Assembly: GCA_037447605.1 (NCBI GenBank)
Contig: CM074819.1
Coordinates: 824,744 to 888,743 of the forward strand
Direction: 5' to 3'
From: Zygnema circumcarinatum SAG 698-1b
Lineage: Eukaryota; Plantae; Zygnematophyceae
Length of the DNA stretch: 64,000 bases
Of the stretch, positions 1,639 through 57,546 are shown piece by piece. The translations under genes and the position numbers were made by a program. Positions within the stretch are counted from its first letter, which is position 1; the number at the start of each line of letters is the position of its first letter. The notes beneath the pieces were generated by a model, which worked only from the letters and a program-made list of their open reading frames with translations, did not search any database and was not told the origin of the DNA.

Positions 1639-1710
1639 GCCTCTATAGCACAGTGGTAGTGCGTTCCCTTCGTAAGGGAAAGGTCCGGAGTTCAATCCTC
1701 CGTGGAGGCA
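1639..1710 (+). tRNA. trnT-CGU: tRNA-Thr(CGT)
   Basis: Folds into a 72-nt cloverleaf: acceptor GCCTCTA/TGGAGGC, D stem GCAC/GTGC, anticodon stem TTCCC/GGGAA with loop TTCGTAA, T stem CGGAG/CTCCG with loop TTCAATC, discriminator A. Downstream T-runs could act as a Pol III terminator. Confidence 0.96.
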
Positions 1711-10807: not shown

Positions 10808-25255
<14,448 letters not shown>

Positions 25256-28527: not shown

Positions 28528-29664
28528 GCAAGAAGGAGGCGAAGTTGAAAAAGTTATCATTCCAACCTTACTTTATTCCTACCTCTCCAGGAGGAGAAGG
28601 TCAATACGGCCACTTCGAAACCATGTACGATAGAAAATTAGGCCAGAGTCGCTACTTCCTCTCCCGCTCCCACCTTCTCTTTCTCCTCTCCCTCCCGGCT
28701 TCCCTCTTTCTCCTTCCTCTCCTTCCCTCCTCTCTTTCCATCCCTCTCCCTCCCTCTCCCTCCCTCATTCTCTCCTCCCTCGCTCTCCCTCCCTCTCCCA
28801 CCCTCCCCTCCCCCCCTTATCCCTCTCTCTCCATCCCCCTCCCCCCTCCCTCCCTCTCTCCCTTCCCTTCCTACCTCCCTACCCCCCTTTCCCTCCCACC
28901 CTCTCCCCTTCCCCCTTCCCTCCCTCGCTCCCTCTCCCTCCTCCCCTTCCCCTCCCTCCCTCCCTTCCTCCCTCCCAGACTTGGATTATAAATCCCCGAA
29001 TTTCCCTTGTAATCTAACGTTCTGAAGTTTGTACAGGCCCCACTAACCCTCCCGCGGATAAGCCCTCCCCCCTGAACCCCCATTTCCGAAACCCTTGTAA
29101 AAGTTTGCGCTTAACTTTTGAACTCCCTCCCATTGGGCTCCTGTGAAGGCTCGGTCACGGTCCAGCTGTACTGTCCATAGCAACCACCTCCCTTTTTTTT
29201 TTTTGATTTTTTTTTTTGGTGCCAATTACCAAATGTTGGAGCGGAGCGGCAAGGAATGTCAACTGTCTACAATGGTTCCAACGGTTGGCTTCATTTGAAG
29301 ATGGTTTGGACGAATGCTGTTCTGCCATCTTGTTCTGTGGTGGCTGCACTAATGCGGTCTTCTAATTCAACGAAAGAATTTAAAAATTAAATAACTAAAT
29401 CGAAGTGTATGTGACCTCAATTCAGGAAACAATAGGTACAATTCATATCAAATAAATAAACTCAGTCGCCACTCGCCAACCATTGGCTGGAGCGAAACAG
29501 CCCGTGCCAAAGCCAGAGCAATGACGTGACGTGACGCGACGTGACGTCAAATAGCGACTTTTAGACTCGTGAGTTCAATGAAATTTCTTTTAGAATTAGA
29601 CCGAGGGTCGACCGTACATGACCGTATGAACATGACGTCTGTACGAGCACCGTGGTTTACACTA

Positions 29665-30104
29665 CAGTAACCCCCCTTAATATTTTCGCAAAGGTTTCGG
29701 CAAATATTATTCCTATTTATTATTATTATTGGGCGAAAATCTTGAAATTTGGAAATATAAGGTCCGTGTTAACAATAGTCGAAAGGTATTATGTTAGTGT
29801 TCATGTATGTCCGTACGTATCGTACCGTGCTTTTAGATACTGTACACGAGCTCCTATTGGTGCCGTACGTATACCGTACGATTTATAGATTCTATTCGTA
29901 CTTACCGTACAGCGTAATAGCGTGACACATGTTCGAAAGCCGTTTCGATTAACAGATTTTGTACTGGAAAATAGGTCAGGTTAGGTTAACACCCCTAATA
30001 CGTTAACACAGAGTTACCGTACAAAAAGGTGGTTTCGGCAAAATCGGGGCGACTTTCTTGGGGGACGCACTGTACAGGGTGGAAAATATTAATGAGGTCT
30101 ACTG
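29665..30104. mobile_element. Tc1/mariner-type MITE (440 bp, TA TSD)
   Basis: TIRs CAGTAACCCCCCTTAATATTTT and (reverse complement of right end) CAGTAGACCTCATTAATATTTT match at 18/22 positions. TA flanks both ends (29663-64, 30105-06). No internal ORF. Confidence 0.75.
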
Positions 30105-30744
30105 TAGATCTGACGATGACGCCGTACCAATGCCTGTCGCTTCAGTACAGTCCTGAAGTGAGTGTCGCGGCCCCGCGGGCCGCGCATGTACGAGGCTATA
30201 TAGAGGTACCGTACGGAACGAGTGGCAGCCTGGCAGGCAGTGACAGGCGGGCGGCGCGCGGGAACGGGTTTGACTTCTCGTGTGGTTCCGGGAAGCGGGG
30301 GGGAGGGACAGTGGGAAGAGGCGCTGCGAGAGAGAGAGGGGGAGAGGGAGAGGGAGAGAGGGAGAGGGAGAGGGAGAGGGCGAGGGAGAGGGAGAGGGAG
30401 AGGGATAGGNNNNNNNNNNTTTTTTTTTTTTTTTTTTTTTTTTTTGCACCTTTCCTACATCTTGACGGCAAGTGGTCGGTTGGGATGAAGAGAATGAATC
30501 ATATGCTCAAATTTCCGTCGACATGTGCGTGTCTTTTCTTGATGTTGATTGATGTGAAAGACAATGGACCATTTGGCATTACCTTTACTTTGTCCGTTTT
30601 ACGATTATTCAATGCAAGGCTTTTTTGTTGCGAGTGACTTTCAGTAGTGGTTTCAAGCACCTCGTCTGTCGTTGTGCCACGTGGCATTCTTGACCCTGGT
30701 AACACTGGTGAGCTTTGGGTCTATGTTTCAGCGCGTGAGCTTCT

Positions 30745-31200
30745 GTTCATGTTCATGTTCATGTTCATGTTCATGTTCATGTTCATGTTCATGTTCATGT
30801 TCATGTTCATGTTCATGTTCATGTTCATGTTCATGTTCATGTTCATGTTCATGTTCATGTTCATGTTCATGTTCATGTTCATGTTCTGCCCTGGCGTTCA
30901 TGTTCATGTTCATGTTCATGTTCATGTTCATGTTCATGTTCATGTTCATGTTCATGTTCATGTTCATGTTCATGTTCATGTTCATGCTCATGTTCATGTT
31001 CATGTTCATGTTCATGTTCAGTTCATGTTCATGTTCATGTTCATGTTCATGTTCATGTTCATGTTCATGTTCATGTTCATGTTCATGTTCATGTTCATGT
31101 TCATGCTCATGTTCATGTTCATGTTCATGTTCATGTTCATGTTCATGCTCATGCTCATGCTCATGCTCATGTTCATGTTCATGTTCATGTTCATGTTCAT
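30745..31200. repeat. (GTTCAT)n hexamer microsatellite, ~75 units, in the SKP1 copy 1 intron
   Basis: Tandem GTTCAT with occasional GCTCAT variants and two short interruptions (near 30885 and 31020). Confidence 0.95.
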
Positions 31201-31317
31201 GTCATTGATCTGACGCCGCCAATGGGTCGTTGTTGTGCGTGTTTGCAGGCCGCCAACTATTTGGACATCCCAGAGCTGTTGGACCTCACCTGTCAGACGG
31301 TGGCGGACATGGCCAAG

Positions 31318-31767
31318 TGTAGCGAAACGCTATACATGTGTTGTATGGCCTAGTATTTACATCCGCGGTTGCCTTTTAATGGTAAAGCACTGGTGTGGGT
31401 ACCGGGAGGTCTTGTGTTCGAACCCTGCCAGGGGCGGGTTTGTTACATTGGTATCATAGCCAGTGCCCGGTATTTGTAATCCACCCTAAAAACACCGTGA
31501 TCTTTGAGCATGGTACGGGTTGCTCAGTGGCCTGAGGGGCTGAGACCGTCGCGGCGCATGTGTTGAAGGAGCTTGAACGCTGCTCGTGAAAACCCTTGAG
31601 TGCGCTCGAGGACAAGCCCGGTTTAGGTGGGGAGGAATGTAGCGAAACGCTATACATGTGTTGTATGGCCTAGTATTTACATCCGCGGTTGCCTTTTAAT
31701 GGTAAAGCACTGGTGTGGGTACCGGGAGGTCTTGTGTTCGAACCCTGCCAGGGGCGGGTTTGTTACA
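31318..31767 (+). mobile_element. TRIM (non-autonomous LTR retrotransposon) with tRNA-like LTRs
   Basis: Identical 130-bp LTRs at 31318-31447 and 31638-31767 (TGTA...TACA). PBS TGGTATCATAGCC at 31449-31461 (one mismatch to the tRNA-iMet complement). PPT AGGTGGGGAGGAA at 31625-31637. TSD CCAAG at 31313-17 and 31768-72. Confidence 0.96.
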
Positions 31768-34700
31768 CCAAGGGTAAGACTGCTGCGGAAATTCGACAAA
31801 CGTTCAACATCAAGAATGATTTCATTCCAGAGGAGGAGGAACAGGTCAAGCGTGACAATCCGTGGGCATTTGAGTAAGTGCGGAGCGGCCGAACACACAC
31901 TTCTCCTTCTTCGTTGACATTCATTCGCTCATTTCGACTGTTCTGCTTGGAGTAGGACCTTCTACATGTGTTCAGTCACAGTTGTCTGGAAAGCACTTTC
32001 TCTCTATCCGTCAAGCATGGCTGCAGTAGGATTTGGCCTCCATCCTTTTCGACAAATATCCTGTGTCAAGTTTGAGCACATTGGATGCAAATGGCACTGT
32101 TTCACCTGCAGTAGTTCGCTGTCACGCAGTACAGTAACTACATGTGCAGAGGCTGCCAGGGAGGGGTCAAGACCAAATGCGTGCTCCGGTTTCATATTTC
32201 AAGCAGCAGTGAGTGAGTCTAAAAATGAAAGAACGAAGTATCGTCCTGCAGAAACATGAAACATGCACCAACAAAGTGTTGATGTATAGGTTACATCAAG
32301 GTGTTGGCACTTAGTTGCTCGCATGAATGTTGTCCGGGACATCAATGTGTTGGTGGAAAAAGTACAATGTGGTATAGGGACAATGTCCATGCATGGATGG
32401 TCATGTTTGGTGAAGGACCGAACATGGGGGGTGCCCGTATCATTAAGGCACGGTACGGCAGGTCTATGGGTGGTCTATGGTCGTAGGTTTGCGGCCTAGG
32501 CTTAGACCGCACCAAAGGGGGTGCGCGGAATGCGCCTGAACGGATGGATCGCGGCCGTACAAACGGCGCCCGACTGTACGGACGACTCGGAAGTGTACGA
32601 ACACGGAGATTTGGGCGCGAGAGGCGGATTTGCGTAAAGCGACATGATTGGTTGCGACAGTGCGGAAATCGCGGCGCATCTCCGTGACACATGGTTCGGC
32701 AATGTCGGTGGAGGAGAATTTGAGATGTCGCTGATTGGTCGGGGTGAGAGCGTGGTGTACGGAGCGCGCGACATGTGGCGCGACGGACGGACTTCAATGG
32801 TAGTGCGCGAAGCGGCGGCGCAAAGCGTCAGTGGTGCCGCTTCAGCATGTCGGTGGCGAATCAGGTGACGCCACGTGGACCATGTTGATAGTGGGTCCAC
32901 GGGTGTGCGCTGACGGCAGGATGGACGCCGGCCGGTTTGCCGAACGAGTGCACTTGCAAGGGCGGGCGTGACGTGATATCTAGTGTCACGTCACATTGTC
33001 ATGGTTGTATGAGAGGGAGCAAGCTTGGCTCTCTCACTCACTCATTCTCGCTGGATGTTATGCTGCTTGAACTTTGCTGTTTAGGAATATTATGTGAAGG
33101 CTGAGGCCTAGAGGATTCTGGCCTTGTGTAGGAAGGTCGTGAAGGAACAAGTTCTCATCATGCTAAGCTTTATTGGAGAAGTTAGGTGGTGTGTTGCCCA
33201 TGTGTTGAGGTAGAGTAGTTCTTGGAGGCATGAACTGTTTGGCTATTGGAGTTGAAGTGTAAGCTATTTATCAGAGGATAGGATAGTGCTAGGGTCGTGG
33301 GCTTTCTCCGTATTATTTTGTCCTTCGTCGTGTGGAGTCCTTGTGTTGGACTGGCGTGGTGGATGAGTGGAGGCGACCATTGTATGGGCGGTGTGTCGCT
33401 CCACACGATTGGAGGTAAAAACCCTAAAAACCCTAAAAACCCTAAAAAAGGAGCCGAGACCATGGAGGAGATGAAGAAGTGTTCATGTAGGTGGCGCGTT
33501 TAGTTTCCGCTGTGTGCGCCTAGCGAGGGGTGGATGAGAAGGTAAGGTAAGGTAAGCGGTATGTGGCCCAAGGAGAAGTGGAGGAACGTTTTGAGTGTCA
33601 TCCGGGCATGTGTTTGTGTTTATCCTGACTCGAGTCCTCCTTGCACCAACACAAAGTTCTGAACAAAATGCAGCCCCTTCAAGAAAATGGGAATTTGAGG
33701 AATTGGGTAATTATACTCGGCAAGAGAAGAAGTTTGAAACTGATTGTGGCTAATTGCCAAACATGTGAGCGCGCGCGAATGAACGTCGATGCCTCGTTGA
33801 ACAATTAAAAAACTTCTGTTGGTAAACTTGCTTTGTCTGCAAAACTGATCAATAGTGTATGATTAGTTGCTCGTGACTGGTTTGAATGAAACCATGGCGT
33901 TGTTTGGTCGACAGTTTCGTTTAGTTTTGTAAGTTGTGTGTCTATTAAGGAGGTTCCTAGGGTTGTGGGAGAGCTCTCAATGGGCATTGGTGCAGCCACA
34001 AGGCACTACCTCTGTCTATGGGGGGATCAATCAAATCAAAGTTTGATCAATCAAAGTTTTTGTCAATGGTTGTCTATGGTCGTTTTTCTGTATGGTCACT
34101 TCGTATCACGTCTTCAGATCTATTGAAATTATATTCGAAAGGCAATGAAGTGCGATGTTAATGCAGATTGCGCTTTGCTGCTACTGTAACGAATTGTTTT
34201 CCGCTAATCCCCATTTTATGTTTGGATTCTCTGGTGATCCTTGCTCAGACTCCCATCAACGAAAGGTAGAAGCACATACATCGACGAATCACTGACAAGT
34301 TTTTCAGGCTGTGATGTCTCGCAATCTCACATGTACAAATCCTTTACAGAGGTTCAATGAGACTTCCAAGTTGAGTCTAAGTTGAAAGAGAATTATCGAG
34401 GTCCTTATGGTTTTATTTCCTCCAAAATTGTAAAGTGATTATCATGCTGAATCAGCATTTTCTTGCTGAAGGGCCCACTAGCTGCATACATTGCGAAATG
34501 TTTTTTGGCGTAGCAACAAGGACACAGTTTGTATCCGCGAGTTCTACTCCTGCCTTGGCTATTCAGCTGTACACAGAGAGGAACGTTCTCAGGACAAATT
34601 ATAGACCTGACCCTTTCGTTGGTAGCCTCTCAATGTTGAAAGACTTTAAAGCGTTCCAAGGGTTGGCATGCTAAATTCTTAAAGATCAAAACCCCAACTA

Positions 34701-39625: not shown

Positions 39626-40502
39626 ATGGCTTCGCAGGAAAAGGTCAGGCTCAGGAGCCGCGAGGATGAAGTGTTTGAAGTGGGTAAGGAAGTTGCTCAG
39701 ATGTTTGAGGTTCTGGAAGATGTGCAGATAGATGGCGCCATGAATTTGGACGTTAGCAGCAGGGCTTTGGCGAAAGTGATTGAGTACTGCAAGAAGCATG
39801 CGAAGGCGAACAAGGCGGAGGGCAGTGAGGCAGAGGAGGACGAGGAGGAGCTTAAGGCGTGGGATGCGGATTTTGTGAAGATGGAGAATTCTGATCTCTT
39901 CGCCCTTATTGAAGTACGTAATTTCCTTTATGATGCTCCTCCCTTTACTCGACGAGGACATTTTGATGGCTAATGTTCGGTTGGGCTGAAGGGAGTTACT
40001 CATATGCTGATTTCGTAATTTTTCTTCACGTTGTAATTGCCATCGAAATGTGTTATATCTTTTTACCAATTTTGACTGTTGGGAAAGATAATAAACCTTT
40101 TGGTATTACCTTTCCCTTGAGCGTTTTGCGATTCTGCAATGCAAGATTTTTTTTTTTGGGAGTACATTTGAGTGCTGGTTTAAGGCACCTCGTCTGTCGG
40201 TGTGCCACGTGGCACTCTTGTCCCTTGGAACAAATTGGAGAGTCCTGGGTTTACTTTTTAGCGTCTAACCTTATGTTTATGTCATTCATTTGACGCTTCC
40301 AGATTGTTGCTGTTTTCTCTGTTTGCAGGCCGCCAACCTTTTGCAAATCAAGAGCCTGCTGGACCTCACATATCAGACTGTGAATGACATGATCAAGGGG
40401 AAGACTCCTGCGGAGATTCGGCGGCTGTTCAACCTTAGGAACGATTTCAGTCAAGAGGAGGAGGAAGAGTTCAGGCGTGGGAACAAGTGGGCATTTGAGT
40501 GA
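39626..40502 (+). CDS. SKP1: SKP1-like protein (intact copy 2); exons 39626-39913, 40329-40502
   Basis: Motifs: [97 protein letters not shown]. Confidence 0.93.
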
Positions 40503-42207: not shown

Positions 42208-43151
42208 GGGTAGTGATATTTCCACCCCTTTTTTGGATCCAAACACCCCTTCCCGGCCGGGCAGATTTCAAAAAGGATTAAAAACGGAAAATGCTTTTTC
42301 ACACCTTTTTGGAATCGATACCCACCCTCTATCGGCAGATTTTATTTTTGCGAATGAAGGAAAATGATAACCCGTCACCCCATTTTGAATATCCCGCCTA
42401 CCTGAATTTTTTTTTTCACGCGTGCGGTCAATCGCAGCCGTCGATTCCCTCGCAGATCGCAACACGGCAGATCACTATTTGCTCTGCAGCCGGGCAAGGT
42501 CACAGCGAATGGCACGTGCCCACGTATCCCGCCAAACTCGTCTCAAAAAGTTGTCCGTACAAATGTCGTATGGTTGCAACTTTGAGGAACCCAAAATACA
42601 TTGAGAGCTTGAACCAATCAAAATTTTCCACGTCGATATGTAACACGTGGTAGATGTTGATTGGTTGGAATCTGACAATGACGAGATCTCGGGCCGAGGG
42701 ACGCGCGCACTCGCACGTGCGATCCGGCTTTGACGGGACTCGTGGGCGCATTCCATTCGCTGAAATCGAGCCCGGCTCCAGATCGAACGGTGATCTGCAG
42801 TGGTGCGATCTGCGAGGGAAATCGACAGATGCGATTGACATGCACGTGTGAAGGACGGACACCCGCGAACGATCTCGTGGAGGACGGATCTTCCGCTCCG
42901 AGCGGATTCGAGCAGGCAGATATTTCTTTCCATCAAAAAAAAAATTCAGGGAGGCGGGATACAGTATTCAAAATGCGGTGACGGGGTATCATTTTCCTTG
43001 GTTAGCAAAAATAAAATCAGCCGACGGAAGAAGGTGGGTATCGATTCCAAAAAGGTGTGAAAAAACATTTTCCGTTTTTAATCCCTTTTGAAATCTGCCC
43101 GGCCGGGAAGGGGTGTTTGGATCCAAAAAAGGGGTGGAAATATCACTACCC
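42208..43151. mobile_element. PIF/Harbinger-like MITE, 944 bp, long TIRs, TTA TSD
   Basis: Ends GGGTAGTGATATTTCCACCCC...GGGGTGGAAATATCACTACCC. Inverted similarity runs for ~200 bp and resumes further inside. TTA flanks both ends (42205-07, 43152-54). Related copies lie at 59650-61343. Confidence 0.9.
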
Positions 43152-43830
43152 TTATTTTACCTTTGTACCTCCGGGCCAGGTTTGACTCCCCCCTTTTCGC
43201 GCCCCCGCGCTCCCTCCCGCCGCCCGCCGCCCGCCGCCATCCGTTTTGTCGCCACGCGCGCCTCACACGTGCGAGAGGCGCTCGCACGTGCGTGACGCGC
43301 ATGGCGACAAGGCGGGGCACGATTCCTCATCGGCGGATAGCTGGAATAACCTATTCCACCGTACGGACGTGACAGACAGGTTCGGGGGGAGCCGTGGTTT
43401 CCGATCCGAATTCAGAAATCGAAATCAATACCTTTCCGCCGGCGAAATCTTTCAATTCCGCGGGCGATGGTCAAGGTCTGACTCTCCCTAATCTGCGAGA
43501 TTTTCTTACAGTACCTCGGGCCCAATTTTTGCCGTACGACAGTTTGCGCCAGATCAACGATTTTTGTACTTTACAGAAACGGGCGAAATTTGAACGCGAG
43601 TGGACCTGGGTCCACGCGCTTTGCGATTGCCAAGATCTAGTTGTTGGTCGGTCGATGCGAAGTACTGTTTATACTTGAACACGACCGAGAGTTGATTGTT
43701 GAGGGGGTGTCAGACTTATCGAAATCTAACGAACAAGAAAAAAATCGGTACTCCGCCGAAATGGCATGGCATGGCAGCGGCATGTCATGGCATGGCATGA
43801 AAGTGTTGTACCATTTGTCCGTACGGTATA

Positions 43831-43942
43831 TGTACTGTACTGTACAGTGTACAGTACTGTACTGTACAGTGTACAGTACTGTACAGTACTGTACACTGTA
43901 CTGTACTGTACAGTGTACAGTACTGTACTGTACTGTACAGTA
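43831..43942. repeat. Self-complementary (TACTG/CAGTA/GTACA) simple repeat containing a perfect 38-bp palindrome
   Basis: 43864-43901, GTACAGTGTACAGTACTGTACAGTACTGTACACTGTAC, equals its own reverse complement. Confidence 0.9.
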
Positions 43943-44573
43943 TGAACAAAGTCGCAAAGCTGTACGGCCAATAGTTTGAATTTGGCGGTTTCCGTTTAAA
44001 AAAAATCAAAATCAACTTCCGAGTCTTGCCAAAAATATTTTCTGAATTGGTCCTTTTGGCTATGATTTTACAAAATTTTGAAATTATGGATTTCTGTTTA
44101 TTTAGTCAAGAAATTTTAGCTGTCGTCCGCCATTTCTGAGGGCGACTCTCTCTCAATTGACCGGGCCGTTCCATTCTGCGCAGTTTGACAGTTATCTGTT
44201 CCGTTTCCGCACATTTCTCGAACTTCCGTTGAGAGGCCGCGCATGTGACGGCAGTTGTTGGGAGTCAGGGCTTTGCCAGATCCGGCCTTGGGCTTCAGAG
44301 TTTTAGGGTTTGGAGTTTAGGGTTTCGGGTTTAAGAAAGTACAGGTTTAGGGTTTGTGAAGCTTCAGGGGTTTTAGACATTCGGATGGGATTGGGAGTCT
44401 CGGAGTTTTTGTTCGGCGATTTTTGAATTTTTTTACGGGTTTTCGGACTTTCGAACTTCAGGAGTTTGGAAGTAGATTGGAGGGCTCAGAATATTAGGGT
44501 TTAGGTTCTGGCGGATTTGAGGGTTTAGGGTTTTGCGGATTTAGGGTTTAGGGTTTCGCGCAGGGGACGAAAG

Positions 44574-55900: not shown

Positions 55901-57546
55901 AAACCCTAACCCTGAACCCTTCCCCTAAACCCTACTCCTGAACCCAACCCCCTGAATCCTACTCCCTGAACCTTACTCCCTGAACCCTACCCCCTAAACC
56001 CTACCTCTGAACGCTACGCCTGAACCCTACGCCTAAAACCAACCCCTTTGCTCACATCATGCCGGTGTAGAGGACGAGCATGGAGGGAGAGGAGAGGGAG
56101 ATCGGCAAAACGAGGAATCCGGAGCTGCGAGAGTTCAGCGACTGGAAAGTCGCGTCTAACACCTTGTAACCTCCTGCGGGCAGCGGGACCACCCAGTTGG
56201 GAGGGAGGGAGGGAGGGAGGGAGGGAGGGAGGGAGGGAGGGAGGGAGGGAGGGAGGGAGGGAGGGAGGGAGGGAGGGAGGGAGGGAGGGAGGGAGGGAGG
56301 GAGGGAGGGAGGGAGGGAGGGAGGGAGGGAGGGAGGGAGGGAGGGAGGGAGGGAGGGAGGGAGGGAGGGAGGGAGGGAGGGAGGGAGGGAGGGAGGGAGG
56401 AGGGAGGGAGGGAGGGAGGGAGGGAGGGAGGGAGGGAGGGAAAGAGAGAGAGGGGGAGGGAGGGAGGAAGGCTTTCAAATTGCAGTTGTTTTAAGATCAA
56501 ACGAGAAAGATGACTTCAATCCAAAGCTTTACTTCGATTAGTTCATTTAATGTCCTTCGTGACTGTTTTCAACTCACCGGAGAGACCGTTGAAGACGGAT
56601 CCATTCCAGTCCAACAGGCAGAAAAAAAATGCTTCAATAAAGTTGAAAGCAATGACGGTGATGACGAGCCAAAGCGTTTGATGCCACGGAAACAAATGTG
56701 TGAAGCATTTCCGGGGGTGGTCCAGCAAATACTTCAAGGTTTCCGTCAGCTGTTTCGACTTTTTAATTCCCTTCTTCGTTAGATATTTAGATTGGCGGTA
56801 GAGGGAATAGATGATTCCACGCAGAGTGGGAGCATAGAGAGTATTTCCGACGAGGATGAGCGATCCCATGACAAAAAGGAACACGATTGCTTTCTGGAAA
56901 GGGAGAAGGTTCAAATCGAGGAGAGCGAAGCCGGCGTTTTGGAAAGCAGAGACAGTCTGCAGGAAGGAGAGAGAGAGAGAGAGGGCGAGAGAGGAGTAAA
57001 GGATTGTCCGAGAACTTGCTTTCAGAGGTAAAAGGGGACGAGAGAGAAAGACAGGGAGAGAGAGAGAGTGAGAGAGAAAGCGAGAGGGGGAGAGAGAGTG
57101 AGAGAAAGGTTACGATAGGGAGATGACAGACAGTGGCAGGGAGAGCTATGACAGATAGAGAGGGAGAGTCGTGAGGGAATCGTGAGCCACTAGTCCAACG
57201 ACTTTAGGGTTTTATTACTTAGAGGAAAAATTACATTTTGAGGCCCACCTGGAAGGCCGAAAAGAACGTAGGGCTGACGTCATAGGTTCCGAGCTGGTTG
57301 CGCTGTCCGGGCGCGCCCCAAAAGTTTATTCGCAAAATGAAAAATGCGAAAAGTTGAATTCCGAGGAGGTACGAGGGGATGAGCCAGCTCAGCAGCTGGA
57401 GGGCCCTGTTCACACCACAACCGCCGAGTGAGAGGGAGAGAGGGAGAGAGAGAGAGAGAAACCCTAAAATCCAAACATCTCGAAAGCTTGAATCCCAACA
57501 TTCCTCGATTGTTACAAACCCCGCAAGCCCATACACTAAACCCCAA

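Follow-up and report, generated by a model that had tools for sequence, protein, structure and literature searches.

A pair of short direct repeats in a gene-rich region of Zygnema circumcarinatum SAG 698-1b raises two questions: what kind of mobile element they delimit, and whether the tRNA-like sequence that they carry is a coincidence, a relic or a promoter read by RNA polymerase III (Pol III). The window is the whole stretch of 64,000 nucleotides that was analysed, and all positions are counted along it. A first-pass annotation, made from the letters alone, had proposed a very young TRIM with a tRNA-derived Pol III promoter in its LTRs, Cassandra/Helenus-like in character.

Structure of the element

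A repeat search combined with a script delimited a TRIM of 450 bp at 31318-31767, bounded by two direct LTRs of 130 nt that lie 320 nt apart, are 100% identical and have termini of the TG..CA type (TGTAGC...GTTACA). A complete, non-coding LTR element of this length had been claimed, with LTRs alike at 130/130 positions, a PBS, a PPT and a CCAAG TSD, and each of these parts was recovered at the position given for it. The features are as follows.

31313-31317, no strand: left copy of the TSD, CCAAG (from the sequence and from a 5-nt overlap of the flanks on an uninterrupted paralogue)
31318-31447, + strand: 5' LTR, 130 bp, TG..CA, with an 8-bp hairpin close to its head; same sequence as the 3' LTR
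31362-31435, + strand: tRNA-like block of the 5' LTR, decayed; A-box-like part 31369-31384, B box 31414-31425
31374-31377, + strand: TTTT within the A-box-like part; twin at 31694-31697, the element having no other run of at least four T
31448-31637, + strand: internal region, 190 bp, non-coding, no Rfam family
31449-31461, + strand: PBS-like TGGTATCATAGCC, starting one base past the 5' LTR
31625-31637, + strand: PPT AGGTGGGGAGGAA, adjoining the 3' LTR
31638-31767, + strand: 3' LTR, 130 bp; tRNA-like block repeated at 31682-31755
31768-31772, no strand: right copy of the TSD, CCAAG (from the sequence and from the paralogue alignment)

The PBS-like sequence TGGTATCATAGCC has one mismatch to TGGTATCAGAGC, the common plant initiator-tRNA-Met PBS, and its type is consistent with the initiator-tRNA priming that had been suggested. 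The longest open reading frame lying fully within the element is of 67 aa, and an exact look-up of this internal frame among recorded called genes gave no match; the internal 190 nt hold no meaningful reading frame. Short TG..CA LTRs, a non-coding interior, a PBS, a PPT, a TSD and a length below about 1 kb together define a TRIM, and all are found here.

The small motifs reported for the LTR are also present, namely CTTT-TAATGGT-AAAG at 31373-31387, the pair CTGGT/ACCGG at 31390-31394 and 31401-31405, and AGGTC at 31407-31411. The B box GTTCGAACC was located at 31416-31424 and again at 31736-31744, and the spacing from GG to TTC within the LTR is 36 nt, the same as in the real tRNA-Thr of the window (1639-1710).

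Insertion into an SKP1-like gene

The element lies within the second exon of an SKP1-like gene, which has an intact tandem relative in the window. The first-pass annotation had made no mention of this coding exon. The relevant features are the following.

30410-30419, no strand: assembly gap of 10 N, at the expected place of exon 1 of the interrupted gene
31249-31317, + strand: left half of SKP1-like exon 2, Skp1 profile positions 2-16, encoding AANYLDIPELLDLTCQTVADMAK
31773-31877, + strand: right half of SKP1-like exon 2, Skp1 profile positions 17-48, then a stop codon
39626-40502, + strand: intact tandem SKP1-like paralogue with one intron; exon 1 at 39626-39913 (Skp1_POZ), exon 2 at 40329-40502 (Skp1)

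Pfam was run on each half of the exon on its own, while the exon minus the element was only translated. The halves match Skp1 (PF01466) at positions 2-16 and 17-48, and because these are contiguous the element cuts the domain between two neighbouring profile columns. Its orientation relative to exon 2 is sense, and it is the Skp1 dimerisation domain that is split. Translation continued from the exon into the LTR meets a stop at 31351-31353 after 11 added codons, so that the predicted protein would be without the final 34 residues of the Skp1 domain.

The paralogue, 9 kb downstream and uninterrupted, serves as a proxy for the empty site. It is colinear with the interrupted locus through a GA-rich upstream repeat, the intron, exon 2 and the 3' region, and the colinear alignment breaks exactly at 31317|31768. 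A three-way alignment showed that both flanks share precisely 5 nt on the paralogue. An empty site with a 5-nt overlap shows that the element did insert here and duplicated 5 bp of its target. A third, more distant SKP1 paralogue (16/114 positions differ; ..ADMIKGKT..), situated elsewhere in the genome, is more conserved and is about 10x deeper in the RNA runs. The interrupted gene is thus one of at least three that are SKP1-like, and the alga probably tolerates losing it.

The interrupted locus has no counterpart to some 400 bp of the paralogue, which comprise exon 1 and the beginning of the intron, and the break coincides with the gap at 30410-30419. The gap, within the region 30303-30460, has a (GAGGGA)n repeat on one side and a poly-T run on the other. 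A microsatellite of some 450 bp, (CATGTT/CATGCT)n at 30748-31197, fills the intron of the interrupted gene and has no counterpart in the intron of the paralogue, where the alignment skips from 30752 to 31193.

The neighbourhood is rich in genes, including TCF25, an expansin, an EH-domain gene, the two SKP1-like genes and two Trk/HKT genes. No retroelement genes were found in it, and no autonomous partner was seen in the window. The best match of an HKT/Trk exon, at 42% identity and in a database that lacks the window's own proteins, is to Mesotaenium endlicherianum, which favours a streptophyte alga as the host. Other features of the window include a tract of 3,775 bp that is purine-only on the + strand (13332-17106; GC skew = AT skew = 1.0) and a second purine tract of 273 bp (56199-56471). 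CCGTAC/GTACGG occurs 40 times in the whole window; nine of these sites cluster in 29612-30211, a stretch of 600 bp upstream of the interrupted SKP1-like gene, and another six in 43001-44000. GTAC cores are binding sites of the SBP-domain/CRR1 type.

Transcripts across the insertion

Parts of the stretch are contained in 20 runs from 6 studies, all under one species label, and four of these (X1, X3, X9 and X20) were compared with the 781 letters of 31210-31990. The run data are assembled contigs, from which transcript starts, transcript ends and the polymerase are not readable.

In X1 and in X3, which come from two studies, one contig matches 31248-31347 with 0 differences. Upstream it goes on for another 375 nt or so of non-intronic sequence, and depth in the intron bin 31210-31236 is zero. 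The last 30 letters of the upstream sequence encode ..KNNDLFDVIM, in frame with AANYLDI, and correspond to the Skp1 motif found ahead of the paralogue's intron (..NSDLFALIE). Spliced upstream sequence together with an empty intron identifies X1 and X3 as RNA, and the spliced mRNA of the gene thus enters the LTR. Exon 1 itself (about 290 nt of coding sequence) was found in the window neither with the RNA-contig sequence nor by motif searches, and its 30-mer from the RNA contig had no match in the window at up to 3 mismatches. This absence fits an exon 1 that falls in the assembly gap.

A second contig covers 31738-31990, again with 0 differences and at similar depth, so the RNA continues past the 3' LTR through what remains of the exon and on into the 3' UTR. 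The junction contigs hold 30 LTR letters against a bridging rule of 31. Thirty letters is the unitig overlap of k-1 expected at a repeat, and the junctions are accordingly taken as present in the X1 and X3 samples. Neither run gave a joint bypassing the element. This copy is carried within a spliced Pol II mRNA whose predicted protein is truncated.

Run X9 is DNA-like and covers the flanks at a depth of only 3-7x. One of its contigs fits the right flank perfectly from 31772 to 31990 and is preceded by 20 unlike letters that match neither LTR end nor the predicted empty site; these could come from another allele or from a chimeric unitig. Nextera adaptor sequence appears in X9 after 31395 and after 31659.

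Is the block in the LTR derived from a tRNA?

Attempts to detect a tRNA in the block with standard tools were negative. The Infernal-type check that the first-pass annotation had named for the LTR found none, as a cmscan search of Rfam (E<=10), made with 601 nt and again with 98 nt, matched no tRNA and no other family. ARAGORN made no tRNA call in the block with default settings, -ps or -ps90. At -ps80 a cloverleaf was drawn at 31362-31435, with an anticodon loop of 6 nt and broken stems, at a threshold that gives 29 calls in 64 kb. Smith-Waterman local alignment of the block with tRNA-Thr did not score above shuffles, and folding of the LTR and of the 74-nt block produced no cloverleaf, with unremarkable z-scores (+0.43 for the block). 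The block is certainly no tRNA gene.

A different picture emerged from the invariant positions. An alignment of block and tRNA-Thr with MAFFT gave 36/72 identical columns; the D region of the block has 3 additional bases, and from G18G19 onwards the alignment is ungapped to the 3' end. A pattern of invariants was then defined as A14, G18G19, A21, 30-31 nt, G53 T54 T55 C56 R57 A58.. C61, U8 having been taken out after its misfit was seen. In 128 kb this pattern matched only the real tRNA, both LTRs and one other site, and in shuffled LTRs it arose 7 times in 20,000. The other match (18498-18500, - strand) adjoins a purine tract and is probably due to chance. When the block was compared with tRNA-Thr over 57 nt without gaps, 29/57 positions agreed (window mean 14.2, sd 3.1; z about 4.7), a score reached by only one further non-tRNA site in 128 kb. 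All of the B-box invariants (G53 T54 T55 C56 R57 A58 C61) are accompanied by G18G19 and A21 at exact tRNA spacing, and the stems are decayed.

The block is very probably tRNA-derived, being either a decayed tRNA or the head of a tRNA-SINE. The earlier claim of tRNA derivation is therefore upheld by the invariants, their spacing and the 29/57 agreement, but not by Rfam, default ARAGORN or the fold. It could instead be argued that the resemblance to a tRNA is coincidental, in a TRIM LTR of the ordinary sort that carries a Pol II promoter. The silence of the detectors, an ARAGORN match at noise level, a local alignment that is not significant and the absence of a cloverleaf fold would all suit such an origin, as would the TATA-like TATACA and TATTTA further upstream in the LTR. 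The rarity of the invariant pattern among shuffles and the single other non-tRNA site at 29/57 speak against it. So does comparison by eye with the published, tRNA-bearing LTR of Helenus-1_SMo, which agrees with the block without gaps at 33/57 positions from TGGTA to the acceptor end, and at 31/43 when the anticodon arm is left out (PMC10886601). The register is, moreover, kept in a diverged subfamily described below. Coincidence is on this evidence improbable.

Relationship to known elements

Helenus elements are TRIMs with tRNA-like sequence in their LTRs and, in their fungal and plant members, a 5-bp TSD (PMC10886601). Their hosts are fungi and animals and, among plants, Selaginella moellendorffii only (Kojima 2024, PMC10886601). 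Box A of the form TRGCY plus YGG and box B of the form GGTTC are given for 'most' Helenus families (PMC10886601). The present element has both the tRNA-like LTR sequence and a 5-bp TSD (CCAAG). Its boxes are each one base off the consensus (TTGCC against TRGCY, TGTTC against GGTTC), with 3 extra nt before A14 and with TGG present.

The likeness to Helenus-1_SMo extends beyond the matches already given. By eye, the spacing from A21 to G53 is equal in the two, and a 15-mer of the Helenus-1_SMo LTR matches both LTRs with 2 mismatches, where about 0.3 such matches are expected per window. The PBS of Helenus-1_SMo, tggtatcggagc (tggtatc..agc), stands at the place matching TGGTATCATAGCC, and both are iMet-type. 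The two elements further share a G-rich PPT, a 5-bp TSD, a tRNA-like block in the 3' two-thirds of the LTR and an LTR of similar size (130 bp here, 120 bp in Helenus-1_SMo). They differ in the internal region (190 bp against 85 bp), and the heads and tails of their LTRs are unrelated. The tRNA block of the present element is also far more decayed than that of Helenus-1_SMo, with broken acceptor and T stems and with an insertion of 3 nt and a run of four T in the D region. The host, a streptophyte alga, belongs to a lineage outside Kojima's list for Helenus.

Cassandra elements have a 5-bp TSD and an iMet-type PBS. They resemble the present element in being TRIMs of the plant lineage whose LTRs hold a block from a small-RNA gene with Pol III promoter boxes (PMC10853983, PMC10886601). 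The element differs from them in having no 5S similarity, the search of 601 nt with cmscan giving no Rfam match to 5S rRNA at E<=10, and in boxes of type 2 (A/B) where those of Cassandra are type 1 (A/IE/C). The description 'Cassandra/Helenus-like' consequently holds for its Helenus half, through the tRNA-like LTR block, and fails for Cassandra on the missing 5S match.

SINE2 elements are likewise comparable, with a decayed tRNA head, a retained B box and spacing, a short non-coding body and a high copy number; the present element differs in lacking an A-rich or LINE-derived tail. Its LTRs, PBS, PPT and 5-bp TSD point to the machinery of LTR retrotransposons and not that of LINEs. Canonical TRIMs (TRIMp2, of the Katydid/Wukong type) and retrozymes are like it in size, architecture and insertion in or near genes. 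Canonical TRIMs, however, have no block derived from a small RNA, and the LTRs of retrozymes carry hammerhead ribozymes, whereas those of the element do not (no Rfam match to a hammerhead or other ribozyme at E<=10, 601 nt). A full-text literature search returned neither a report of TRIMs in Zygnema nor any TRIMp3 paper besides Kojima's.

An assembly artefact, or a Cassandra or retrozyme element in place of a tRNA-type TRIM, would have to be considered at a locus with a long microsatellite and a 10-N gap 900 bp upstream. Yet both junctions occur in RNA contigs with 0 differences in two independent studies, and matches to 5S rRNA and to hammerheads are absent at E<=10, which leaves either possibility extremely remote.

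The locus is thus best described, with good confidence, as a complete non-autonomous TRIM of the Helenus kind, inserted in sense orientation in exon 2 of one member of an SKP1-like tandem pair of a streptophyte alga. Since the definitions of both TRIM and Helenus apply and plant Helenus is reported only from Selaginella, it would represent a new family within the known Helenus/TRIMp3 kind, from a host lineage not reported for it before. The class of element is not new. The earlier suggestion of a family possibly new in this lineage is therefore plausible as far as the family goes, but the kind had already been published (PMC10886601).

Family, copies and age

It is clear from the four runs that the element is multi-copy, with between 36 and 506 contigs per run at a likeness of at least 85%. 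Many family contigs fit both LTRs and many continue into unlike flanks. Depth of the family in X9 is three to four orders of magnitude above that of the flanks (1,000-10,000x), although summed contig depth is not copy number. Other copies within the window were sought by BLAST of the element and none was found; two metagenome scans with conserved LTR patterns also gave no match.

Variation within the family was taken from one contig comparison (copies at least 85% alike, variants with a share of at least 10%). The variant sites among those listed fall at LTR coordinates 22, 36, 39, 76, 77, 95, 108, 112-114 and 119. None of the listed variants lies within 31369-31389 or 31416-31424, and only the final position of the B box (31425) varies. 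With 11 variable sites among those listed, about 2.7 would be expected in the 32 nt of the boxes, and the distribution of variants therefore offers weak support for conservation of the boxes.

A diverged subfamily, seen at a loose contig end, has GGGAGGTC...GTTCGA in register (21/30 without gaps, by eye) and differs in the anticodon-like part. Contigs in X3 and X20 match only LTR positions of about 76-112 (31713-31749, from the anticodon-like part to the B box), with unrelated sequence of about 100 to more than 250 nt on both sides. These core-only contigs suggest that related elements bear the same tRNA-like core in another LTR context. The present copy has minority letters at 31356 and 31676 (one LTR position, in both LTRs), 31504 and 31614, and would accordingly descend from a variant source copy.

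The age of the insertion had been put as very young. With 0 differences in 130 bp, assumed plant rates of 1.3e-8 and 7e-9 substitutions per site per year, which may not be those of this alga, give 95% upper bounds of about 0.9 My and 1.6 My respectively. A recent insertion is consistent with the identical LTRs, and identity alone bounds the age below roughly 0.9-1.6 My. The intact TSD and the still-open downstream half of the exon fit a recent event and are weak evidence for one.

Does the block act as a Pol III promoter?

Pol III transcription of Cassandra is credited to Kalendar et al. 2008 by two later papers (PMC10853983, PMC10886601). The use of Pol III by Helenus is unvalidated, as Kojima himself states (PMC10886601). 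As far as its sequence goes, the block may recruit TFIIIC and Pol III as a working promoter, and the balance leans somewhat against it.

Under the functional TRIMp3 interpretation the block would be a working internal Pol III promoter and the uncapped RNA would be the template for transposition. Transcription would start about 10 nt upstream of the A-box-like part (approximately 31355-31362), read through a leaky run of four T in the 5' LTR and stop at the corresponding run in the 3' LTR. This would give a short R of about 15-20 nt and a template of the sort proposed for Cassandra, Helenus and Ajax. The retention of the B-box invariants, of G18G19 and A21 and of exact spacing in spite of stem decay is the pattern expected under selection on promoter boxes, and Kojima argues likewise from the conservation of boxes. 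The diverged subfamily retains the B box and the register while its anticodon region differs. A length of 450 bp fits the range of Pol III, and the run of four T occurs once per LTR and is absent from the internal region.

Several observations sit badly with a working promoter. Three additional nt lengthen the A box, which reads TTGCC for TRGCY, with T at the R position. The run of four T (31374-31377) lies inside the A-box-like part, some 10-15 nt past any tRNA-type start, and would abort many transcripts. Family RNA contigs often continue into unlike flanks (share 0.18-0.49). Such contigs, together with the presence of this copy inside an mRNA, indicate that Pol II read-through exists, and the sole RNA seen for this copy is Pol II read-through from the host gene. 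The Pol III promoter of the first-pass annotation, and Pol III templating with it, can on this evidence be put forward only tentatively.

A bolder proposal, which we consider unlikely, combines a live type-2 Pol III promoter in a very-high-copy algal TRIM with a run of four T in the A box acting as a leaky terminator that sets a minimal R, the whole module being common to coding chromoviruses of this genome. If true, it would run counter to what has been published on TRIMp3 elements and their autonomous partners, which are expected to be unable to have LTR sequence in common. A further function of TFIIIC binding within LTRs, such as that of a chromatin barrier, would also be implied.

Proposed mode of transposition and significance

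New copies would arise from RNA spanning R-U5-PBS...PPT-U3-R that is packaged and reverse transcribed, presumably with initiator tRNA-Met as the primer, its 3' end being paired to the PBS. Because the element encodes nothing, it presumably relies on the proteins of an autonomous LTR retrotransposon, which would also carry out integration with a 5-bp stagger.

The finding would extend Helenus-type TRIMs from Selaginella, the sole report from the plant lineage, to a streptophyte alga. As the family is apparently abundant and recently active, it may offer a tractable system for the Pol III question on Helenus LTRs. The copy described here is in addition a clean natural knock-in: it is exonic and in sense orientation, its sequence is transcribed as part of a spliced mRNA, and one of several SKP1-like paralogues is truncated by it. 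It can serve as a strain marker and illustrates how a TRIM disrupts a gene in a gene-rich region.
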